This document shows positions 6,373 through 29,911 of a stretch of DNA of 58,281 nucleotides, piece by piece. The stretch's first letter is position 1. Each line of letters opens with the position of its first letter. Location of the stretch: contig JAPDFW010000037.1 in assembly GCA_028826165.1 (NCBI GenBank), positions 1-58,281 of the forward strand, written 5' to 3'. The notes under the pieces were generated by a model that searched no databases, was not told the origin of the DNA, and saw nothing but the letters and a program-made list of their open reading frames with translations. The stretch comes from Anaeramoeba ignava BMAN (lineage: Eukaryota > Protista > Anaeramoebae). The translations under genes were made by a program, and so were the position numbers.

Positions 6373-9300
6373 ATGTTTAGTTCAAATAAAATTAATCCAC
6401 CTGATTATGAGACAGAAAAAGAATCAATTTTGATTCGTAGAGATCGATTACAAAATATTTGTGCATTTCCTAAAGATGATATTTCTATTGAAATAATTAA
6501 ACATAAATCAAGAGTTCAAACAAATGATCTTCCAGTGTGTTTTTATTTTTTCAAAAAGCATTAAACATTCCAATTCAATTATAATTATAAATTTAAATAT
6601 AATTATAAATATAAATATAAATATAAATATATAAATATAATTATAATTATAATTATAAATATAAATATAAATTTAAATTTAAATATAAATATAAATTTAA
6701 ATTCAATTTGAAATTAAAAAAATTTTAAAAGTTTAAAGATTTAAATGTTCCAGAAATCCAACCTTTTGTCAGAGAATGCATCAAACCTCTCATATCAGAT
6801 TGGAAAATTATGAAATGGAATTATAGACAATACCATAAAGGATTGATTCAAATGCAAGAGAATTTCAAAGAAAGAGAAATAGGAAAACAACAACTTGAAG
6901 AAAAAAAAGTTTCTCTTAGAGAAAGATTGGCACAAGCTAAAAGAGCACGCATGGGGGTTGTTACCACAACAAATCGAAGAAAAAAATCACAATCAAGAAC
7001 AATAGGTTATAATACAAAACACAATCTTCAAGAAGAATACCACAAACCAAAACACGAAAAAAATGATCAAAATGAAAATCAAAATGAAAATGAAAATGAA
7101 AATCAAAATGAAAATCAAAATCAAAATGAAAATCAAAATGAAAATCAAAATGAAAATGATTTGGATTCTTTTCCTAAATATGATTTTGAAATTGACCGTT
7201 TAGAATCGCTTGAAAAAGAAGATCCCAAATCAAAAACATCTTTAAAACTCTTTTTCGAATATGATCATTTGGATTCTTTATCGATTTTACAACAGAAAAT
7301 TGAGATTGACCCAACAGAAATTGATGAGGAAATTTTAAATGAATCTTCTTCAAGAAATTTATCCGATTTCGAGAAGAAAATTAATCGCAAAACCATCTTT
7401 GAAATTGCAGGAAATATCAGTGTGGATAATCTTTTTGGCGATCCTCGAATAGTTCCACAACCACCTCAGAAACCAACTCCTTTTCGATTTGTGGTTCAAC
7501 CTGTCGAACTCTCTTTCCAATTAGAAACTAATGAACCATTTTTTTGCACACTTGCTCTTTATGATATTTCCAAAAAATATAAAATTTCGGAGAATTTCCA
7601 TTTTGAATTGAATGATGAAAATTCTCTTAGTTTGATTAAAGCCTATCGTTCGAAAACAATTGATAATGAAACCTTAACAACTCAAGCTCTTTTTAACATT
7701 ACTGAACCAAACAAAAATATGTATCTTGTGTTAAGAATAGAAAAAGTATTTCAAGAAGAATATAGTAAAGTGATTGAGCCCTATTTAAAAATGAATGTAA
7801 GCAAAATGAAAATTTAATTTAATTTAATTTAATTTAATTTTATTTATTTTAATTTAATTTATTTATTTTAATTTAATTTAATTTAATTTAATTTAATTTT
7901 ATTTATTTATAAGTCTGGCAAAAAATCAGGACTTAGTTTTTCAAAAGTAAACTCACAAATCGAAATTTCTTGCATCACATTCGGAAAATACAGACAAGCA
8001 TTTGGATGGTCAGCGTTGCCTATTTTTGACAGAAATAAAGCATTTCTTTTTGGTCAAGATTCAGGAACAAAAATGGAACCAATATTTCCCGTCAAAGATG
8101 ATCTAACAGACGAATATATATATTCATTTTTAAACGACAAAAAAAACAACAAAATACCCAAGCAACAATTGCTTCCTGGAACCTTTCTTTTCTTGGGGAA
8201 AATCGTGAATGATATTGATGAAATTGAAGAACGTATTTTGGATCCATCACTTTTCCTATTGGAGAAAGCCAAAAAGGAAGATGAAAATGAAAATGCAAAT
8301 GTAAATGCAAATGAAAATATAAATGCAAATATAAATGCAAACGAAGAGTTTGTTCACGAAATACAAGAATTCGGGTTTGATATGTGCACATTTCCGTACG
8401 ATTCTTTTGTCAATAACATGTATCTTTATCCGCAAAATGTGATTCATAACAAGAAAATCAAAGGACTCAAAACACAAAATTTGGTTGTCAAAGTGCAAGT
8501 TTTTGCCGATGATTCCAATATCAAAGGTCCAGGTTTAAAGGTGATTTATGGACGAACACAAACGAAGAAATTTGTGAATGAAATATTTACTCATATTCGT
8601 GCGCAATCGCCCAAAAAACGACTTTATGATGAGATTAAAATTATGCTTCCCGTTTTCTGTCCAGAGAAACTCCATATTTTATTCAGCTTTTTTTATGTAT
8701 CCAAAGCAAAATCCAAGCGTTCTTTTGAAGCTGTGGAGACTTTTATTGGGCATTCAATACTTCCTTTATTACCCAAGAAGCAAGATTCTTTCCAACATCT
8801 GGAATCTTTGCCGATATATTTTGATCTTCCAGAAACAAACTATCTTGGAGAAATCAACAAAGAGACTTCATTAGAAAAGAAAAACCAGCAATTCAAACTC
8901 AAGATTATTATGATCAGTTCCATTTATCCCACAGACCAATTCTTATCGACTTTTTTCGCAAATTTCACTGAAAATAATCAGCAAAGTCTGATCAACTACA
9001 TCCAATCTTTAAATAAAGTTGGCGCACCAGCTGCGACAGAATTCTTTATTCCTTTGGTCAATATTTTGGTGCAGATTCTTGTCAATGGAGAAGTTTCTCG
9101 GATCCAATTTGAGGCATTCAACGCAATTGTGAAAATTGTGCTTCTGGTACAAGAATACCATCCAGGAGCCAAAAGTTTAATTTTCAAGCCATACATCCAT
9201 TACTGCTTTCAAAACCCTAACATTTTTATCCAGTATTACCAACAACAGGAAGAAAACCAGAACAAGAAAGAAGATAGATCATCCAAAACAAATATCGAAA

Positions 9301-12300
9301 AAATCCCATTGTCAAAAAGATTACCATTCAGACAAATTGTGTATCAATGGCGAAACTCATTGAAGTTTGAAAAGGCGCAATCAAACAACCAGCCCAAAAG
9401 TCATCTTGTGACTACATCTTGGTTTTTGTTTGAAATTGTGATCAAATCAATGGGGCTTCATTTGGATAATTTGAATCTGCTCAACGACATGACCCGAAGC
9501 CGCACTTCATGGTTCGAATTGGAGTATGTAAGAGACTTGGAGCTTCTTCTCGGGAGCTTAGTTGAAACTGTTCAAAACCAATCCGAAAGATTCTTTTCGA
9601 TCGCAAAATCACTGAATCGCACAATCGCGTATTTCCTCAAGGATCTGATTGGGTTGTTTGATCGTGGAGTTGTGTTTTCTTTAATTGATTTCTATCTCGA
9701 GAACTTGAAAAATAGCACAGACTCCAAATTGGTCAAGATGATTGAGTTTTCCTTTGATTTTTTACGCATCTTATCCCAATATGAGCATTATATCCCGTTG
9801 AATCTCCCGATAATCTCAGAGATTTCGCGGCACCAATTCAATTTGGATTCGTATTTATCACATAATTTTTTGGTTGGCTCATCACTTGATGCAGAAATCG
9901 ATCAAGAAGATATGCAAGAAAATGATGGGAATGAAAACGCCAAAGAAACTTTAAAGCAAAATGAAAAAGCAAACGAAAATAATGAATTAAGTATGAGTGA
10001 ATTCCACAAATTGCTTGATGAATTTGGGATTTCTCAACCATCTCTACAAATCAAAATCACGTCAGACGATTTCTCAGGAATGATAACTGAGATTGGAGAA
10101 AGCCGAATGCAAAGCACAATTCTCCAGTTGTTTTTCCATCAGCATTTTCTTATTGGAATGATTATCCAAAATGTTTGTCTTATTATCGACATACAATTCC
10201 AGAAGCTCATGAATGAAAACTTGAAAACAAGAGGAATATCTCTTTTGCGGCATCTATTGAACAGCCATGATCTTGACCAAAGATATCAAGATCAAGCATC
10301 AAAGCAGAGAATCGCGACGCTCTATCTTCCTGTGCTTATTGTCATGATAGACAACATTGAAGGAATCAAGAAAATGCTTGTCGCTGAAGAGCAAAAAGAG
10401 TTCATCATTTGCTTATTGTATCTTTTGAAAAACATCGATAGGCATTTACTTCTTAATGGATGGTGGCGCAATGAGATTTATTCCAAAAAAATAGGCTTTT
10501 TCCAACTGCTCAAGTTTTGTCTTGTGAAATTTCAATATATGGGAAAACAAAATATAAGTGAACAAACCGCAAAGAAATTCCAAGAGAAAAAACAGCAAAC
10601 AAACTTTAAAGTCTCGGAAGCTCGAGAATTATTGGAGCATTTCTACGAGTCTAAATTGGATATGGACAAAAACAAATACCCTTCTATTGGACAGCAGGAA
10701 TTATTCCAAACAAATGCAATGCAGGATGAATTCAGAATGAGTTACGATGTGAATGCAATGAACCCAGAAAGACCTTATTTCACGGATCTTTATTCTGGAG
10801 GCTCATTGAGACTGGAAGAAAACCCTGTTGAGAATATCAAAATGCTTCCAAAAGAAAATTGGAAGGAGTCGCGCAAAGAACTAACGCGAACAACGACTCT
10901 GGGAACTTTATCAGAGCGTCCCACTCCATTCGGCAATTTTATTTTGGAAGGAAATCTGAATTTCGAAGCAAGTTACACAATTCTCGAGCTTATTGATGAA
11001 CTTGTTTCGAGATGTCTTGTTGATTTTGGTGTTGGAAATATCGATTCCCAAGATAAACTGATTCTTGATAATATTTTCCAAGTTTTGCTTGTATTTTTTC
11101 AGACAAACCAAACTGATCTTCTTTTTGAACAGTTTCTTTTCACTTTGAAGGCATACATTACCAACTTCCAGCGCTTTCTTTTCCTTGATGACTATCCATT
11201 TTTACAGGATTTATGCACAGAACTATTAAGAGCATCGTTTTATCATAAAGAAAAAATACGCACTCTCGTTAATTCCCTTCTTTATTTATTGCTCAAGAAA
11301 AATTTCGAAATTTCCAATAATATTATGGCGATTGCGATTCGTTTGATGATTTCTCTTTCTAAAATTGTTTCCCAAACACAAGATCGCGAACAAGATTTAT
11401 TGATAAGAAGAACACTGAAGATTTTGAGAATGCTTGCCAAAAAAGAAAAACTTTGGGATTTTTATTCTCTTGTGAAAAACATGACGAAACAAATGGATAA
11501 AATTGCCAAAGATAGTTATAAACTAAAGCAATTCAGGCACGATCCTGAAATGACTTCTTTTCTATACTACAGAATCGCACAAAATTACCGGCACATTCCT
11601 GATGTTCGTTTGATTTGGTTGGAATCTTTAGTGAATTTCCATAAGAAAAACGATCAGCGCACCGAAGTTGCCATGACAATGGTTCATATGCTTGCTTTAG
11701 TTTCTGAGTGTTTATATCTAATCAATCCAGAACTCAAGCATATTCCTTCAGGCGCAAAAGATTTTGAAAAAATTACCACAAATTGCAGCGAGGAATCTTT
11801 TCCTCAGTATTTATCGATGATATATAGTTTCACTAATTATGGAGATGACAAACAATTCAATTCCAATGAAAATTTCAATTTAAATTTAAATGAAAACAAA
11901 AACCAATTTGATGATCTTGATTTCCATTTTGAAAATATACAAGAAGAAAACAACAAAAAAGAAGAAAAGAACAAAAAAGAAGAAAACAACAAAAAAGAAG
12001 AAAACAACAAAAAAGAAGAAAAGAAAAAAAAAGAACTCGAACAAAAGAAATTATTCTATCAATCCAAAAGTTTTTCCATTTTTAACTTCCAAACCAAAAA
12101 TGAGGATTTACCCATTCTTTCCAAAATCAAAGAATTTAATATAAAAGAAGACCAAAGCTCAATTTATCTAAAACAAGTATGCAAATCAACATACTTTTCG
12201 GAAAAGGGATTAGTCAATTTATTCCATGAAACAACCGAAGCATTAAAAAATGCCCAAATGTTTGAAAGCATTAACAAAATTTCCAAAATGCTCATTTCCA

Positions 12301-13655
12301 TCTATGAATATAATCGTGATTTAAAAAATATCGTTGTTTCCTATATGAATTTGAAGAAACTGTTTGAAGATTTACTCGAGGAGAAAATTGTATCCAAACC
12401 TCGGATTTTAGGATCATATTATCGAGTTGGGTTTTATGGCAAAAAATTTGGGAATTATCATAATGTGGAGTTTATTTATAAAGAAAAAATGGCAACCCAT
12501 CTTTTGGATATCACTGAAAGACTGAAAAAACAATTTGAGTCTATTCATGGCGAAAACCGAATCAATATAATCACGACTTCAAACACTGTCAACACGGATG
12601 AACTCGATATTGAGAATGAACTATATTTGCAAATCACTGCTGTTGAGCCTTATTTTTCTGATGAAGAAAACCGAACAAGAATCACAAAGTATGAAAAAAT
12701 GTATGACATCAAGAACTTCTTTTTCGAGACTCCGTATACAACAACAGGAAAAGTTCGTGGCGATGTTGGTGAGCAATGCATGAGAAGAACAATTCTCACT
12801 GTTCAAAAGGCCTTTCCTTATATAATCAACAGACTTCCTGTGATGAAAAAAATCACAGAAGATTTATCTCCAATTCAAGTTTCAATTGAAAATTTAACTG
12901 CAAAAAACAAACAAATCCAAGACCAACTTTCTCATTTAAATTTGGAATTATCTCAATTACAATCGCTTCTTCACGGTATTTGTTTAACTTCTGTTAATGT
13001 TGGTGTTCTTGAGATTTGCAAAGTTTTTTTATCTTCTTCAGAAAGACAGAAATATCCTCAAAAAGATTGTATTGAAATTGAAAATCAATTAAAACTTTTA
13101 CTTCAATTATTATATAAAGGAATTATTCGTAATGAATCTATGATCAAAAAAGATCAAATTGCTCTTCATGAAGCAATTTTAAAAGGATATCAAAACTTAG
13201 TTGTAAATATTTCTCCTTTTTTAAGGCATCATAAAAAGAAAAAGCATTTGCATAGAAAAGAAAAGCAGAATGAAAATTTAAATGAAAATTTAAATGAAAA
13301 TGAAAATGAAAATTTGAATGAATTAGAAAATGAAAATGAAATAGAAAATGAATTAGAAAATGAAAATGAAAATGAAAATGAAAATGAAAATGAAAATGAA
13401 TTAGAAAATGAATTAGAAAATGAATTAGAAAATGAAAATGAAAATGAAAATGAAAATGAAAATGAAAATGAAAATGAAAATCAAAATCAAAATCAAAATC
13501 AAAATCAAATTCAAATTCAAAATCAAATTCAAATTCAAAATCAAAATATGAATGATGAAGATGATCTTAATTTAACTTTAAATTTAATTGAAAATCCAAA
13601 TTTAAATTTAAGTTTATCTGATTCTGATTCTGATACAGATACTGATTTGGATTGA
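6373..13655 (+). CDS. DOCK-family (zizimin/DOCK-C/D-like) Rho GEF; introns about 6535-6735 and 7797-7913
   Basis: N-terminal FPKDDI...PFVRECI...SDW, EPFFCTLALYD, C2 DHR1 (NNMYLYPQ...YDEIKIMLP...HILFSF) and DHR2 (YYRVGFYG...FIYKE...QITAVEPYF...FFFETPYT...SVNVG). NE/NQ tail. Confidence 0.93.
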
Positions 13656-13887: not shown

Positions 13888-16800
13888 TCATCTGTTATAA
13901 ACTTCTTCAACCCAAGCAACATAATCAAAACCAGAATCTTTTTGAGGCATATTATTAACCAAATATTCAATAGTTTTTGTTTGCATTCCAGCAGCTTGCA
14001 TATCATTCTGAGTAACATAATCTTTACCAGCAGCGATGACTCTCCAACTCTCAAGGGATTGTTCACGAGTATCCGCATCTTCATGTCTCTCTGTCATGAA
14101 CTGGACGAATTCATCAAACTCAATAGTACCGTTTCCATCTGCATCATATTTATCAAAAACAGCCTTGAGTTCTTGCTCGGATAGATCATCTCCAAGCGAG
14201 TTCAACACGGCAGAGAACTCATAGTTGTATAAACTGCCTTTCTTATCACGATCGAAAAGATCGAACATTTTCTTGAAATCATTGAGTTGAGTCGGTGACA
14301 CTTTGCTTCCTTCTTTGACAAGCATTTCTTGCTCAATGAAAGCCGCTTTTTTTTGGATCGCATCGACGACTTGTTCGAAAAGTACTGTGAGATCGCTGAC
14401 AGTCAAAGTTGTGAATTTGTTTGTGTGGATGTTGCGCGAGTCGATGTCTGCTTGGAGTTGCTTGAGTTCGTCAAGTCGTGGTTGTTGATCCATCAATTCT
14501 CGTGACAGTTTGCGCGTGAGTGGGAGTTCTTCTTTGAGATTCCCTGAAACTTCGGCAAGGGCAAGATGCTTTTTTTCCTCGAGATAGTCGCTGAGAGCTT
14601 GTGCCTTTGTTGCGAAGTTTCTGCAGAGTTTTTCGTTTTCAATTTGGATTTCAAGTTCCTTTTGAAACTCTTGTTTTTTCTTTTCGAGCAAAGAAAGCAA
14701 AGAGTTCCATCTTGAGCGCATTGTATCGATTGTGTATCCGAGGAAATCGGTGATTCCAAAGTCGCTGAGTTGCTGAGCAATACTTGCGAGATCATCGAGT
14801 TCTGATTGTTGGTTCTCGATTTCGGATTCGTATTTTTGTGTGTCTTTAAGAACAGTGCGCACCTCTTCAGGATCTTCTGCGAAAAGAGGCTCTGTCAAGA
14901 AGTCCTCCACATAATCGATCCATGCGCGGAGCTTCTTGCATCGGGAAGCATAGTCGAACCGCAGATCCTCCATGCGTTGGTGGAGTTCCAATTGTTCTTG
15001 AAGTTGCTGTTTTTTTGCCTGTTCAAGTTCTTCCATATTTCCCCATCGCGATTTCAACTCGTTCATTTTGTTGGCGACTCTGTCCTTCTCAATGTAATCC
15101 AAATCAATGATTTTTTGTCCGATGTCGAGACATTCTTGCAAACGATCCTGACTTGTTTCGTATTCGTTATGATAAAGATCAAGCATTTTGAGTTTCAGTT
15201 GCGCAATTGAGACGTTATCAATCTGCTCTTCTTGCTGAAGATACTCTTCCTTTTCACCCGCCCATTGCTCAAGACTCGCCACTTTTTTGTCGAATAAAGC
15301 AAGCAATTTTCTTAGCATTTTTTGCCTGGCAAACTCTTTATTCATCGCGTCAATTCGGGCCAATTCTGCCTGCGTAAGATCATCCCATAATTTATTCAGT
15401 TCTTCAACAGACAATCCTTCAGGTGGCAGATAATCAGGTCGGTTGTTTGATGCCAGTTTGATCTTGATGTTGTTCATCAGCGACTCAAGCTCCACTTTCT
15501 CCGCTGTTCGTGGCGGTTTCTCTTCTGTTTTATACGTCTTGAAATCTTCTTTGGCTTTTTCAATTCCTTCGTAAGTGTTATCGAAGGTGTTGTCAGAAAG
15601 ATCCTCGATTTTCTTCTCAATCCATTCTTTCAAATCACTTGCTTTTGCGATATAATTTTCCTTCAAAGCGTCGTTTTGTTGGGTTAAATCAACAAGTTTT
15701 CCTATTCTTCTTCCGGCAACTTCTGCCTTTTGACCTTTTGAAAACACTTTGAAATATTCCGAAAGATACACCATTACTGATCGCTCATCTGGCTTGATAT
15801 CAATCATATCCTCTGCGTCAAGAAGCTGTGCGATTCCAAGTTCTTTTTCTGCGATCTGGAACGCTTGGTTCAAGTTGTCTCCTTTGTTTTCTTTCTTTAG
15901 TGAGTCGTAATCAAGAAGATCTGGTCGATGTCTGTGGATTAATGCGTTGAATCCAAGTCCGTCTTGCCAACTCCAGGTGAAGTTTTTGATGTCTACGTCT
16001 CGGTATCCTTCTGTTTTTCTTTGGCACCAAAGAAGAAGTGCTTCTTTAGCTGTCAGTTGTTCTACACTGATATCTGCGATTTGGAATCTAAGAATGATTG
16101 TCCAGATTGTTCCAAGTGTGAGTTTAACATTTCCATCAACGATATCTTTTTTTTTCAATAAATATTAAAAAATATATTAAATATAAAATATAAAATATAA
16201 AATAAATAAAAATAAATATATAAAAAAAAAAATAAAAATATAAAATATAATATAAAAATAAAATATAAAACATTAAAAATATAAAAATATAAATAAATAA
16301 ATAAAATATTAAATAAAAATATAAATATTAAATAAAAAATATAAAATATTAAATAAAATATAAAATATAAATATAAAATAAATTATTAAATATAAAAAAT
16401 ATTAAATATAAATAAATATTAAATATTAAATATAAAAAATATATAAAATATTAAATAAATATAAAAATAAAATTAAATATTAAAAATATAAAAATAAATA
16501 TAAAATATTAAAAAAATATATTAAATATTAAAAAATAAAAAATAAAATAATAAATAAAAATATAAAAATATAAAAATAAAATATATAAAATATTAAAAAT
16601 TAAATATAAAATATTAAAATATATTAAAATAAAATATAAAAATCAAATATAAAAATAAATAAATATTAAAATAAAAAATAAATATTAAATATAAAAATAT
16701 AAAATAAAATATTAAATATAAAATATAAAATAATAAATATAAAATATAAAATAAAAATATAAAAAATATAATATAAAAAATAAAATAAAAAATATCAAAA

Positions 16801-23823: not shown

Positions 23824-24063
23824 TTTAAATTCAATAAAATAAATCAAATCGAATCAAATCAAATCAAATCAAATCAAATCAAATAAAATCAATTTTTTCT
23901 TTTGGATTATTTTATAAAAAAGAATATTTTGGAAATTTTTGAAAAGAAAAAAAATGATTTTTTCATTTTTTCATTTTTTCATTTTTTCATTTTTTCATTT
24001 TTTCATTTTTTCATTTTTTCATTTTTTCATTTTTTCATTTTTTTATTCTTTTATTTATTTATT

Positions 24064-27000
24064 ATGTCAAATAATTCTCAATTAAATAAAAATAATAATA
24101 TTTTGAAAGAAATTCATTCTCCTATCCAACATTCTTCAATAAATCAAAACGAATTTTTTATAACAAGCTTAACGGATAATAATAAATTAATTTTTCAAAA
24201 AGAAAATTCTTTACATGAAAGACAAAAGCCAAGTCAAGAATTTAAGAACAATTTACAATTAAATTCAAATTATAATTCAAATACAAATCAATTTATAAAT
24301 AATCCAAGTCAAGAATTTAAAAATAATTTAAATCAATTTATAAATAAACCAAGTCAAGAATTTAAAAATAATTTAAACCAATTTATAAATAATCCAAGTC
24401 AAGAATTGAATAATAATTTACAATTAAATTCAAATTATAATTCAAATTCAAATCAATTTATAAATAATACAAGTCAAGAATTTAAGAATAATTTACAATT
24501 AAATTCAAATTATAATTCAAATTCAAATCAATTTATAAATAAACCAAGTCAAGAATTTAAAAATAATTTAAATCAATTTATAAATAAACCAAGTCAAGAA
24601 TCTAAGAATAATTTACAATTAAATTCAAATTATAATTCAAATACAAATCAATTTATAAATAATCCAAGTCAAGAATTTAAGAATAATTTAAATCAATTTA
24701 TAAATAATACAAGTCAAGAATTTAAGAACAATTTACAATTAAATTCAAATTATAATTCAAATACAAATCAATTTATAAATAATCCAAGTCAAGAATTTAA
24801 GAATAATTTAAACCAATTTATAAATAAACCAAGTCAAGAATTGAATAATAATTCAAATTCAAATCAATTTATAAATAATACAAATTATAATTCAAATACA
24901 AATCAATTTATAAATAATCCAAGTCAAGAATTTAAAAATAATTTAAATCAATTTATAAATAAACCAAGTCAAGAATTTAATGAACAATTTACAATTAAAT
25001 TCAAATTATAATTCAAATTCAAATCAATTTATAAATAATCCAAGTCAAGAATTTAAAAATAATTTAAACCAATTTATAAATAATACAAGTCAAGAATTTA
25101 AGAATAATTTACAATTAAATTCAAATTATAATTCAAATTATAATTATAATCCAAGTCAAGAATTTAAGAATAATTTAAATCAATTTATAAATAAACCAAG
25201 TCAAGAATTTAAGAATAATTTAAATCAATTTATAAATAATACAAGTCAAGAATTTAATAATAATTTACAATTAAATTCAAATTATAATTCAAATTCAAAT
25301 CAATTTATAAATAATACAAGTCAAGAATTTAAGAATAATTTACAATTAAATTCAAATTATAATTCAAATTATAATTATAATCCAAGTCAAGAATCTAAAA
25401 ATAATTTAAAATTAAATTCAAATTATAATTTAAATCAATTTATAAATAATCCAAGTCAAGAATTTAATAATAATTTACAATTAAATTCAATTTATAATTC
25501 AAAAGAATTTAAAAATAATTTGCAATTAAATCAAAATTATAATTCAAATTCAAGTCAATTTATAAATAATTTTAATCCAAAAGAATCCAAAAACAAAAAA
25601 ATTATGGTTACTTCTGATTTCTCACAAAAAAAACTTAACAATTTCCAAAAATCTCCACAAAAAAATTTACCAAATTTTAAACATTTCCAAAAAATTCCCA
25701 TTTTATCAAATATGAAAAAACAAGAAAATCATAACAAAATTCAAAACTCAAATGAACTTATTACAAATTCTCCAAAATTATCACCAAATTTCATCCCAAA
25801 AAATAATATCGAAAATAATGTAACATTTGTATCAAATTCACCTCAAAATTTAATGAAAAAATCATCTAATCAAAACTTAAATCTTTATCACAATTACCAG
25901 ATTCAAAATTCAAATATAACAAACGGAAATTTGGATTCTTTCAATGTTTCTGAAAATAAAATTCAAAATGATAATTTACAATTGCAAAAAGCTTCAAAAA
26001 TACCTCAATATAACAATTCCCAAAAATCAACATTTAAGCAGCACTCAATTAAAAGATTATTCCCTATCCCAAAATTTCAGCAATTTAATAAAAACTCGAT
26101 TGATACAATGAAAGGTTTAAACCATTTTGAATCCAAAATATCGGAAAATTCCGATCCAAATTTACTCAATCCATCTTTTCAAAATTATATAGAACAAAAA
26201 CTACAGAACACAAACAACTCTTCATTAATAACAAAAATAGACAGCCAATTACCATTTGAAAAAAAGCAAAATACGGATTCAATTCAAACAGAAATCCCAA
26301 ATCAACTCATAAATGTATCCATTTCTTTTGAAATGAAATCCAAAACCCATATGTTTTGCCGAAGAGCTTATCACATTGAAATTGAGAAAATATTTGAGGA
26401 AACTGAAACATGCTATTTTGATGAGGTTGAAACAAATTGGGTTTTTCATTTTTCAAAATATAATGAAATAATTCAAAAAATCGAAACTTTCCAAGAAGAA
26501 AACCTTCGCTTCAATATACAAATTGAAAGAATCCCTGACAAAATATATAAATACTTTGAAAAAATCAGAAACAGAAACCCTTTCCCACAATCTCAAACAC
26601 AAAATATCATCTCTAAAATCCCAAAACGTCTATACAAAACATTATTTGATTTCCAAAAAAATGCTATTCAATTTGGAATTGAACATGATGGAAGAATTTT
26701 AATTGCTGATGATATGGGATTAGGAAAATGTGTCCATAAAAATACACTTATTTATACGAATTCTGGTGTTTTTCCAATCCAAAAAATATTCAAGAGAATA
26801 TTTTCTCAAAACAAAAATGTTCATTTGCAAATGGATTTGGCTTTTGGAGAATGGATCAATATCCCGTCTTCAAAATCTTTTTCTGTATTAGGATTTTCTA
26901 ATTCAATTCTATCTTTCCAACCTGTAAAGGCGATTTATAGAGAAAAACAACCACTTATTCAAATTACCACACTCCAAAACGGATTTGAAATTAAATCTGG

Positions 27001-29911
27001 CTTGAATCATCGTTTCTTCACAAAAAATGGATGGATCAAAGCAGAAAATATTTCTGGAATTGATGAGGTTGCTTTTTGTTCTGGCTATTTCTTCAAATTT
27101 GGTTGTGGTTTCCAAAATCAAAATTTATTGCAAAATATCACAATTCACGAAATTTCTATTTTAGCAATTCACTTGTTTCTAGCTGAGGAAAATAATGAAA
27201 GAAATCAAGTTTTAATCACCATTATTTCTTCAAAATTCTCTCTTTTCCACAAAATTGAAAAGGAAATTTTACGATTTGCTTCTTTTTATCAAATTCTTCC
27301 AATCAAATCAAACAAAAAATACAATAATAGAAACACAAATAAAAAATTAATTTCCATTGAATCAAGAGAATATATCGAGAAAATCACAAATTTGAAGTAC
27401 AAGTATGGATTCAACCAAAAGAAAAAGGAAATACCATATTCTGTATTAAATTGGGAAAGAAAAAAAATAAGTCATTTTATTCAACTTACATTTTGTTTTT
27501 GTGGTTCAATTCATTTCCAAAAGCATATTCCTATTATTCAATTCCAATTCAATAACAAAAAAATTGCGAAAATGGTTTTTTTGATTTTAATTGGATTTGG
27601 AATTTACTCAGTAATTGAAAGTATTAACAACAAATTCTATATTCGAATCGAGAAGCTCGAAGAAATTAAGAAATATTTATTTTTGATTAAATTTCATAAA
27701 TGGAATGATTTAGAATATAAATCAACAATTCGAAAAATGGAAGAAATAGTTGGAAAAGAAAAAATTGATGATGAAATGAGAAAATGCCAAATAATATGGA
27801 TCAAGGTTTGCAAAAAAAGAAGGAAAATAAGCGAGCAAAATTATATATATGATCTATCAATAAGAGGAGATCCCAATTATTTTGTGGATAATATTTTAGG
27901 TCACAATACACTTCAAGCAATAGGATTAGCAAATGTATATAGAGAAGAGTGGCCATTGTTAGTTATTGCACCTCCAAGTGTTTGTTTTGCTTGGGCAGAA
28001 GCATTGGAAAAATGGAATTCACTTGAAATTTACATCAAAATTAATATCATTCAGAAGAAGAAGGCAATCCAAAACATTGATTTATCCAAGCCCGTAACAA
28101 TAACAACATATAATTTGGCAACAAGCGATACATACAATCCACTTTTTATGAGGCAAAAATTCAAGGTTGTTATTGCGGATGAAAGTCATTACTTAAAAAA
28201 TCACAAAACAAAAAGAGCCAGAATGATTTTCCCTTTACTTCGCAAGGCAAATCGGGTGATTCTACTTTCAGGGACACCTAGTTTGGCTCGACCAGAAGAG
28301 TTATTCACACAACTGAATGTTTTGCATCCTGAATTTTTCAGTAATTTCCAGGATTTCCGCGCAAGATATTGCAGACAAAATAAGCAAAAAAACACAAAAA
28401 ATATGGGGATGACAAATTTTGGGAATCGATTCAAAGGATACAGCCATATGAAGGAATTGCATGTTTTGATGAAGAATACATGCATGATTCGCAGAAGAAA
28501 AAACGATGTTCCCAATGATTTACCTCCAAAAAATAGATATCCAATTTTTTTTGATGTTGAAATTAATTCCAAAACTGAGATCATATACAAAAACATCACT
28601 GTTTATGATGCTTTTCTTAAAGAAAGAGAAAGCAAACGCAATCAAGAAATCTCCTATTTTGATATAAAGAATAAAAGAAAGCAAGAAGTTATGTCACTTT
28701 ATACAATAACAACAACTTTGAAAATCAAATTTGTTCAAGATTTTATTGATAAATTTTTGGATAAGCATCCCAAAGAAAAAGTGATAATATTTGCGCATCA
28801 TCGAATAATGATCAAATCAATATGTTCAGTATTACGCAAAAAGCATGTGCGTTTTATTCGCATTCAAGGAGGAACATCAATAGAAAAAAAAAAGCAATTA
28901 GTAGATATTTTCCAAAACAATGCACTTTATCAAATTGCTGTTCTTAGTATAACTGCAGCTGGTCAAGGAATTCATTTAATTGCTTCTCATATTGAAATAT
29001 TTACTGAGTTGTTTTGGTCTCCTGGTGTTGTTTTGCAAGCTGAGGATAGAGCACATCGGATTGGTCAAACTCATCCTGTTGATATTTATTATTTGATTGC
29101 TAGTAAAACTGCTGATGATTTTTTGTGGGAAATGTTACTTAGTAAATCAAGGAATTTATCCAAATTTCTTGATGGTAGAGAATCTGAGTCTTTTCCGACT
29201 TATGAAACTTTTGGACAAAATCAAAATAAATTAGAAAATCAAATAGAAAATAAATTAGAAAATCAATTAGAAAATAAATTAGAAAATAAATTAGAAAATA
29301 AATTAGAAAATCAAAATCAAAATCAAAATCAAAATAAATTAGGAAATAAATTAGAAAATCAATTAGAAAATCAATTAGAAAATAAATTAGAAAATAAATT
29401 AGAAAATAAATTAGAAAATAAATTAGAAAATCAATTAGAAAATCAAAATCAAAATCAAAATGAAAATGAATTAGAAAATAAATTAGAAAATGAATTAGAA
29501 AATAAATTAGAAAATCAAAATCAAAATAAATTAGAAAATAAATTAGAAAATCAATTAGAAAATCAATTAGAAAATCAAAATCAAAATCAAAATGAAAATC
29601 AATTAGAAAATAAATTAGAAAATCATTTAGAAAATAAATTAGAAAATCAAAATCAAAATCAAAATCAAAATCAAAATCAAAATCAAAATCAAAATCAAAA
29701 TCAAAATCAAAATAAATTAGAAAATAAATTAGAAAATAAATTAGGAAATGAATTAGAAAATAAATTAGAAAATAAATTAGGAAATCAATTAGAAAATGAA
29801 TTAGAAAATAAATTAGAAAATCAAAATCAAAATCAAAATCAAAATCAAAATCAAAATCAAAATCAAAATCAAAATCAAAATAAATTAGAAAATGAATTAG
29901 AAAAAAATTAA
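24064..29911 (+). CDS. SMARCAL1: SMARCAL1-like SNF2 annealing helicase (HARP-like domain + ATPase) interrupted by an intein; N-terminal SQE repeats; apparent 1-nt frameshift near 24980
   Basis: HARP-like AYHIEIEKIF...YFDEVETNWVFHFSKY; LFDFQKNAIQFG...GRILIADDMGLGK|TLQAI...EEWPLLVIAPPS; ADESHYLKN; LLSGTPSLARPEELFTQL; KVIIFAHH; LFWSPGVVLQAEDRAHRIGQ. Confidence 0.9.
24229..25560 (+). repeat. Coding minisatellite of 45-nt and 75-nt units (PSQEFKNNLNQFINK / PSQEFKNNLQLNSNYNSNTNQFINN)
   Basis: CAAGTCAAGAAT recurs at 45/75-nt spacing; about 21 SQE copies by hand count. Confidence 0.9.
26729..27907 (+). mobile_element. Intein (393 aa) with degenerate LAGLIDADG homing endonuclease domain, in Walker A of the SNF2 helicase
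   Basis: Block A CVHKNTLIYTNSG, block B EIKSGLNHRFFT..GWIKAENI, block F YIYDLSIRGDPNYFVDNIL, block G GHN, then +1 Thr. Excision restores DDMGLGKTLQA exactly. Confidence 0.95.

Follow-up and report, generated by a model that had tools for sequence, protein, structure and literature searches.

A SMARCAL1/HARP-like SNF2 ATPase of Anaeramoeba ignava with a class 1 intein in its Walker A motif

The SMARCAL1/HARP orthologue of Anaeramoeba ignava very probably carries a canonical class 1 intein, a Hint domain enclosing a LAGLIDADG-type domain, fixed at the GLGK/T site. We analyzed a window of 58,281 nucleotides (strain BMAN, contig JAPDFW010000037.1 of assembly GCA_028826165.1), and all features given with positions lie on its forward strand. 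The insert occupies positions 26729 to 27907 and is 393 codons long, in frame and free of stops. It precisely separates the GLGK of the Walker A motif (motif I) from the T that completes it, in an SNF2 ATPase resembling SMARCAL1/HARP. The translation starts with Cys and ends with His-Asn. On the 5' side, the N-extein ends with GGA TTA GGA AAA (26717 to 26728), which encodes the GLGK half of the motif, and on the 3' side the reading continues with ACA CTT CAA GCA (TLQA). The Thr at +1 (27908 to 27910) serves as the C-extein nucleophile and also completes GxGKT, as placed by the sequence and by alignments A1 and A3. In the intein-free SMARCAL1 orthologues P0001, P0002, P0004 and P0016, GLGK-T is contiguous exactly at the insert position (alignment A1). 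The initial annotation had described a 393-codon in-frame insertion between GLGK and TLQA and had proposed a comparison with intein-less orthologues; the coordinates, the translation and the four orthologues all agree with that description.

The host gene is a single open reading frame (24980 to 29911) for a 1,643-aa precursor, identified from the ORF list and its homologues. A conserved core is flanked by Asn/Gln-rich repeat tails. The best homologues of the protein are SMARCAL1/HARP proteins, with 36 to 40% identity and E values of 1e-83 to 1e-88. The best match of all, P0001 from Polysphondylium, is named just SNF2-related protein; PF07443 is present in two top matches that are named for SMARCAL1, the Schistosoma Harp (Smarcal1)-related protein P0002 and the animal SMARCAL1 P0004. 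These matches scored 298 to 317 bits, whereas the HNH-bearing ZRANB3 proteins scored 160 to 200 bits. One HARP-like unit was seen in the host, directly upstream of the ATPase core (26369 to 26491). It matched PF07443 (HARP) at 15 to 17 bits (16.8 bits, E = 0.005), which is below the 25-bit cut-off. By BLASTP, this region and the linker following it aligned with the HARP2-to-ATPase region of P0004 (E = 3e-15). The C-extein is 38 to 41% identical to SMARCAL1 orthologues (alignment A3). It contains the SNF2-related ATPase lobe 1 (27944 to 28654; PF00176, E = 7e-29), with DESH (motif II, 28178 to 28189) and LLSGTP (motif III), and the Helicase_C lobe 2 (28742 to 29065; PF00271, E = 2e-13), with QAEDRAHRIGQ (motif VI). 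These three motifs and GLGK/T (motif I) are all intact, and the frame is open from the HARP-like region to Helicase_C, with no frameshift. Motifs, Pfam matches and closest homologues uphold the earlier assignment of an intein that divides a SMARCAL1-like SNF2 enzyme at its Walker A motif. The nuclear setting claimed with it is supported by the neighboring genes, which encode an alpha-actinin-like protein and a DOCK-family GEF and place the intein in a eukaryotic nuclear context.

The segment was confirmed as a genuine class 1 intein by Pfam, by its conserved splicing blocks, and by a Hint plus LAGLIDADG fold. A Hint-domain HMM search, which had been suggested as a check, returned Pfam PF14890 (Intein_splicing) at 47.0 bits (E = 3e-12) against a cut-off of 35.8 bits. 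We aligned 13 related P-loop inteins, the window copy and 12 others (alignment A2). Cys1, Gly13, His94, Asp375, His392, Asn393 and the Thr at +1 are invariant in this alignment, and they include every residue named beforehand (Cys1, block-B His, block-F Asp, the His-Asn end and Thr+1). The N-terminal Hint (splicing) subdomain (residues 1 to 118, 26729 to 27082) contains block A with Cys1 (codon TGT, 26729 to 26731) and Gly13, and block B with His94 (27008 to 27010). It was delimited by alignment A2, by the β-strand pattern of the model, and by matches to DnaB mini-inteins in the PDB over residues 48 to 115. In the block-B TxxH, Gly replaces the Thr, at a position that differs across the family (Ser, Gly, Thr and others). 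The C-terminal Hint subdomain (residues 354 to 393, 27788 to 27907) contains block F with Asp375 (27851 to 27853) and block G with His392-Asn393 (27902 to 27907), as judged from alignment A2 and from alignment with PDB entries for DnaB mini-inteins over their C-terminal blocks. There are seven more Cys residues in the intein besides Cys1. A single-sequence AlphaFold run was unusable (pLDDT 33.7), but the AlphaFold (AF2) model built with alignment A2 had a pLDDT of 82.1 and a pTM of 0.86. The top Foldseek matches of this model were TliVMA (E = 1e-19, TMq 0.64 to 0.66), PI-PfuI (2e-16), PhoVMA and PI-SceI (2e-9), and the Foldseek probability was 1.00 against TliVMA, PI-PfuI, PI-SceI and many mini-inteins. 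The Hint fold expected of an intein is thus present.

The center of the intein is a degenerate LAGLIDADG homing-endonuclease-like domain (about residues 135 to 350, 27131 to 27778), recognized from alignment A2 and Foldseek. In the AF2 model it has the double αββαββα fold and matches the LAGLIDADG folds of I-DmoI, I-SceI, I-Tsp061I and WhiA. Alignment A2 shows that LAGLIDADG motif 1 (LFLAEEN) keeps its acid, a Glu, and has Asn in place of Gly. Motif 2 reads FCFCGS against YFDAEGS in the relatives, with the catalytic acid changed to Cys, and a region of about 100 aa that follows motif 2 in the relatives is deleted. In Pfam, the window intein had no match to LAGLIDADG_3 (PF14528) at E values up to 1, while 11 to 12 of the 12 other inteins in alignment A2 matched it. 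The domain keeps its fold but, judged by these losses, looks inactive as an endonuclease. Without the motif-2 acid and the DNA-recognition region, the element has most likely lost the ability to home.

An intein in a HARP/SMARCAL1 host protein is already known. Gallot-Lavallée et al. (2023, PNAS; PMC10710043) reported roughly 100 inteins in A. ignava, located where the host proteins are strongly conserved, and verified splicing for three other Anaeramoeba inteins. That paper names HARP/SMARCAL1 as a host at one of eight sites common to A. ignava and A. flamelloides, in line with the initial suggestion that the allele might have been catalogued. It also describes a novel Prp8 intein site, AKWK/TAEE (Prp8-f), reported only for A. 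ignava BMAN, and Prp8 of the present genome carries an intein at AKWK/C...HN/TAEE. The genome is about 78 to 80% A+T, and the value reported for A. ignava BMAN is 80.65%. A profile search of the 42.8-Mb genome gave 38 matches to PF14890. The published A. ignava/A. flamelloides HARP/SMARCAL1 intein, compared with ours by host protein as listed there, agrees in host family and genome fingerprints, and the window intein is most likely that published entry itself. An exhaustive search of 1.84 billion representatives found neither a self match nor an A. flamelloides orthologue, and there was no Anaeramoeba protein among the matches in either protein library searched; one of the look-up tools may omit own-genome records. 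A word-indexed protein search with the intein alone gave no match, as expected for a length-filtered search, since inteins are embedded in far longer proteins. Because no orthologue came from the protein search, the sharing of the site with A. flamelloides is taken from PMC10710043 alone. The SMARCAL1 intein illustrates cleanly how a nuclear intein of a eukaryote can split a P-loop; since phenomenon and host were published in 2023, it is no new biology. What we add is a structural and residue-level description of one class 1 intein whose endonuclease domain retains its fold and lacks key residues.

A second SMARCAL1-like paralogue is present on contig C77. It is catalytically decayed, with every ATPase motif lost from a 1,232-codon open frame, and it carries a homologous intein at the same site. 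This intein has intact splicing residues and is 36% identical to the window intein. The observation that a decayed paralogue keeps a homologous intein may be new, and a catalytically dead host bears on why inteins persist. Two readings, which do not exclude each other, come to mind: besides being unsafe to delete, the SMARCAL1 intein might be retained because conditional splicing tunes the supply of the active fork-remodeling enzyme, and/or the C77 intein or its splicing might have a role independent of the P-loop. We regard them as quite unlikely. A P-loop-independent role, if real, would be at odds with the common view that inteins survive only because they occupy indispensable catalytic sites.

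We propose that the insert stays in the SMARCAL1 transcript and is translated with it, and that the resulting precursor would be unable to form a P-loop. Cys1 would be converted to a thioester by an N-S acyl shift, and the hydroxyl of Thr+1 would attack the thioester to give a branched ester. Asn393, aided by His392, would then cyclize and free the intein, and an O-N shift would remake the Lys-Thr peptide bond, leaving a mature enzyme with a normal GLGKT. From the interrupted GxGKT motif we can soundly infer that ATPase activity would require splicing. With its endonuclease apparently decayed, the element is most likely past homing and is probably inherited vertically. It may persist because any imprecise deletion would destroy the essential ATP-binding loop. 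In this sense, it looks like a fixed, endonuclease-dead passenger.

Spliceosomal introns exist in A. ignava, and the segment might be removed from the RNA as an intron, in which case the intein protein would never be made. This reading is hardly credible, and we rejected it on frame, borders and composition. Frame 1 of the segment has no stop in 393 codons, but each of the other five frames has 21 to 28. The chance of a stop-free frame of 393 codons is about 1e-16 from base composition, and 0 of 20,000 shuffles were stop-free. The borders of the segment are TG...AT, not GT...AG. No in-frame GT-AG pair within 15 nt of the borders restores GLGKT, and the only nearby in-frame pairs yield GLGKCHNT or GLGKSIG. 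The segment is 73.5% A+T, similar to the flanking coding sequence (whole window, 77.5%), whereas introns are reported at 91.9%. By GC3, the intein (0.23) is at home among its exteins (0.22 to 0.26). The confident intein fold likewise argues against an intron. A dead, non-splicing relic, in a SMARCAL1 copy that is non-functional or works with a large insertion, would fit the clearly decayed endonuclease domain, the absent block-B Thr, and the pseudogenization of some Anaeramoeba inteins described in PMC10710043. However, all residues for the four splicing steps are kept and are invariant in the family. The intact host ATPase motifs would be unexpected with a permanently split P-loop, and the host core has stayed open. 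We therefore consider such a relic very unlikely.

The C77 intein, homologous and at the same site, could also suggest an actively homing element whose endonuclease still cuts intein-less SNF2 P-loop sites and spreads between paralogues, and P-loop-to-P-loop and inter-paralogue transfers have been inferred for Anaeramoeba (PMC10710043). However, both copies have Cys in place of the motif-2 catalytic acid and lack the same stretch of about 100 aa, and PF14528 gives no match in the window copy. The two copies are also too divergent for a recent transfer, their low identity being ancient in appearance. Lesions common to the two favor a gene duplication that followed the decay of the endonuclease over homing, and we consider active homing very improbable. 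The initial annotation had further proposed a redox- or stress-gated switch. If the intein had been exapted to make splicing depend on redox state, metals or stress, it would time the production of active SMARCAL1. Some prokaryotic inteins are known to splice conditionally, as noted in the background of PMC10710043, and the site is reported there in two species with only about 37% protein identity between them. The additional Cys residues, and the fact that two paralogues have each kept an intein whose splicing residues are intact, would also be compatible with a switch. However, none of these features is specific to regulation. The retention is equally well explained by the cost of an imprecise P-loop deletion, and some 100 inteins in many proteins of the genome argue for a permissive genome, not for bespoke regulation. 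The classical redox trap of inteins is a disulfide between Cys1 and Cys+1. Thr at +1 rules out this trap, and the proposal of a gated switch found no supporting feature; we consider it quite unlikely. A fixed, probably splicing-competent passenger remains our preferred reading.

The nearest detectable relatives of this intein are SNF2 inteins at the same site and DnaB P-loop inteins, from phage-like contigs. The SNF2 Walker A inteins of phage-like or prokaryotic metagenome contigs (P0084, P0090, P0095, P0105, P0107, P0113 and P0116) share with it the insertion point (GLGK/C...HN/T), the class 1 residues and the Hint plus LAGLIDADG architecture, at 15 to 26% identity (best E = 1e-8). Unlike the window intein, they match LAGLIDADG_3, have acids in both motifs and contain the extra region of about 100 aa, and their hosts are not SMARCAL1 orthologues. 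A phylogeny against viral and prokaryotic inteins of the same site had been suggested. In a maximum-likelihood tree of the 13 P-loop inteins, the Anaeramoeba copies group with each other in a long-branched clade (100/100), but their sister group is unsettled, so that no viral or prokaryotic donor can be named. TliVMA (7qss/7qsu), PI-PfuI (1dq3) and PI-SceI (1vde) have a two-domain fold like that of the window intein (Foldseek E values of 1e-19 to 1e-9, TMq 0.46 to 0.66) and the same class 1 chemistry, based on Cys1 and a final Asn. They differ in having other hosts and sites, active endonucleases, and only 9 to 16% identity. The Anaeramoeba cluster 1 P-loop inteins, as described in PMC10710043, also occupy Walker A sites and have related inteins in phages, but they are class 3 inteins with atypical N-terminal residues. 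Inteins of class 3 lack a nucleophile at position 1 and use a block-F Cys in its stead. A class 3 assignment of the window intein is ruled out by Cys1 and by the block-F Asp375, which stands in place of Cys. Judged by these residues, it is a different lineage from cluster 1 at the same kind of site.

The SMARCAL1/HARP-like host gene is a single unbroken ORF of 1643 aa (24980-29911, + strand) in the ORF listing of the window. Translation of 26729-27907 (+) within it gives 393 residues, beginning with Cys and ending with His-Asn. The junctions read GGA TTA GGA AAA / TGT ... CAC AAT / ACA CTT CAA GCA in the DNA and GLGK / C...HN / TLQA in the protein. Alignment with four intein-free SMARCAL1 orthologues (P0001 from Polysphondylium, P0002 from Schistosoma, P0004 from an animal, and P0016), in all of which GLGKT is contiguous, placed the insert exactly between the Lys and Thr of this Walker A motif, which is otherwise undisturbed. 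The intein frame has no stop in 393 codons, versus 21 to 28 stops in each of the other five frames. At the base composition of the segment, a stop-free frame has a chance probability of about 1e-16; in 20,000 shuffles it never occurred. Because the ORF, the orthologue alignment, and the stop statistics agree, the insertion is real and far beyond chance. The in-frame, 393-codon insertion between GLGK and TLQA proposed in the initial annotation is thus borne out by the ORF and by the DNA junctions.

A profile search for the Hint domain matched the segment to Pfam Intein_splicing at 47 bits, above the cut-off of 35.8 bits, and a PDB sequence search gave weak matches to DnaB mini-inteins in blocks B and F/G. 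An alignment of 13 P-loop inteins shows no variation at Cys1, Gly13, His94 (block B), Asp375 (block F), His392, or Asn393. An AlphaFold model built with this alignment had a pLDDT of 82.1 and a pTM of 0.86. In a Foldseek search of the PDB, full-length inteins ranked first (TliVMA, E 1.3e-19; PI-PfuI, 2e-16), and PhoVMA, intein homing endonuclease II, and PI-SceI were further full-length matches. The splicing domain matched mini-inteins, and the central domain matched I-DmoI, I-SceI, and WhiA. By sequence and predicted fold, the element is a two-domain class-1 intein. The expected splicing residues, including Thr+1, are all present, and both the Pfam profile and the fold agree with the intein assignment.

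The host was also named correctly as a SMARCAL1-like SNF2 helicase. The C-extein matches SNF2-rel_dom (E 7e-29) and Helicase_C (E 2e-13), retains DESH, LLSGTP, and QAEDRAHRIGQ, and is 38 to 41% identical to SMARCAL1 orthologues. SMARCAL1/HARP proteins are the named hits among the top-scoring homologues, and ZRANB3 scores lower. Just upstream of the ATPase core lies one HARP-like unit that falls under the Pfam cut-off and aligns with the HARP2-linker region of P0004 (E 3e-15). Long Asn/Gln-rich tandem repeats flank the core at 23902-26300, with units of the NSNYNSNSNQFINNPSQEFKNNLQL type, and at 29250-29911, with KLENQLEN/QN units. The N-terminal repeat is also encoded, in a different frame, by an overlapping ORF (23902-25011); therefore, it is uncertain where the true start codon lies, and the repeat may contain a frameshift, an intron, or an assembly error.

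The precursor would have no functional P-loop. By established intein chemistry, Cys1 would form a thioester, which Thr+1 would then attack; Asn393 would cyclize with the help of His392, and an O-N shift would rebuild the Lys-Thr bond, restoring a normal GLGKT. Removal of 26729-27907 at the RNA level as an intron is very unlikely. Its borders are TG...AT, and excision at any in-frame GT-AG pair found within 15 nt would give GLGKCHNT or GLGKSIG instead of GLGKT. The segment also has a coding-like composition, versus 92% A+T in introns.

The initial annotation further proposed that protein splicing could act as a redox- or stress-gated switch of SMARCAL1. This idea is unsupported: we found nothing in its favor, and Thr at the +1 position makes the classical Cys1-Cys+1 disulfide trap impossible. 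The persistence of the intein is explained well enough without a switch: an imprecise deletion in the P-loop would be lethal, and about 100 inteins are tolerated in this genome.

The central domain keeps a LAGLIDADG fold, but its sequence no longer shows the marks of activity. The relatives carry LAxLxxWxIAEG and FLRxYFDAEGS; the window intein has LFLAEEN, in which the acid is kept, and FCFCGS, in which the acid is replaced by Cys. About 100 aa after the core, present in all relatives but one in the 13-intein alignment, are absent, and of the 13 inteins, only that of the window lacks a match to Pfam LAGLIDADG_3. Because of the lost motif-2 acid, the missing segment, and the absent profile match, we infer that homing activity has been lost.

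Searching the genome with the window intein found one relative, 36% identical over its full length, on contig C77 (22840-24003, - strand; L033:4841-6004). It occupies the same Walker A site in a 1232-aa SMARCAL1-like paralogue with an intact open frame (G000:C77:21235-24933, - strand; L033:3236-6934). The ATPase motifs of the paralogue have all decayed, with IPGK/T versus GLGK/T, DGTN versus DESH, LSDQK versus LSGTP, and RAENKCLGLKQ versus QAEDRAHRIGQ, and no SNF2 Pfam model matched the paralogue at E 1e-5. In its intein, Cys1, the His of block B, the Asp of block F, and GHN/T are all retained. The paralogue looks like a pseudo-ATPase retaining an intein. The two inteins share endonuclease lesions in alignment, which argues for joint duplication of gene and intein once the endonuclease was already dead.

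When 1.84 billion representative proteins were searched exhaustively with HMMER, the window intein had 22 matches (best E 1.3e-8). Twelve of these are inteins inserted at GK/C, in P-loops of SNF2-type or DnaB-type helicases, and most of the 12 end in HN/T or HN/S. A host-protein search added three same-site SNF2 inteins (P0084, P0090, and P0095). Among the closest detectable relatives are a GVGK/C...HN/S intein in the DnaB-like helicase P0103 (L034:360-3275) and a GLGK/C...HN/S intein in the SNF2 helicase P0105 (L036:4163-6934). Their two contigs, the only ones looked up, are short, densely packed, phage-like metagenome contigs. A single class-1 intein lineage therefore occupies the P-loops of non-homologous helicases. 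In a tree of the 13 P-loop inteins, the window and C77 inteins group together with 100/100 support on a long branch, for which no sister group was resolved.

Third-position GC is 0.23 in the window intein and 0.22 to 0.26 in the exteins; given this equality, the intein did not arrive recently. The window is 77.5% A+T (mean GC, 22.5%). Local GC rises to 0.34-0.42 at 13888-16158 (-) and 8016-13655 (+), over two ordinary eukaryotic neighboring genes, which encode an alpha-actinin-like protein (CH, spectrin, and EF-hand) and a DOCK-family exchange factor (DOCK-C2 and DHR-2). Coding density or codon usage linked to expression is the probable cause.

The reported A+T content of A. ignava BMAN is 80.65%, and its assembly is about one-sixth the size of the A. 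flamelloides assemblies. A. pumila, with 25.8 Mbp at 52-53% GC, is ruled out as the source. We found at least 38 Intein_splicing matches in the assembly (42.8 Mb, 147 contigs). Gallot-Lavallée et al. 2023 (PMC10710043) reported 103 inteins in A. ignava, in highly conserved regions. Elsewhere, an intein of about 348 aa splits Prp8 domain IV (RNase H-like) by about 1 kb (G000:C98:203036-204775, + strand; L038:1501-2910), with junctions LAKWK/C...THN/TAEE. This is the Prp8-f site (AKWK/TAEE), reported as novel for BMAN (PMC10710043), and it served as a species fingerprint. Together with the A+T content and the number of inteins, it fits A. ignava BMAN or a very close relative.

The window element is a genuine intein, correctly described at first reading, and an intein in this host is already published for A. 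ignava, as the initial annotation had suspected. [quoted passage not shown] The same paper describes class-3 "cluster 1" P-loop inteins in Anaeramoeba. We rejected this assignment for the window intein, because it differs from them in carrying Cys1 and, in block F, the class-1 Asp.
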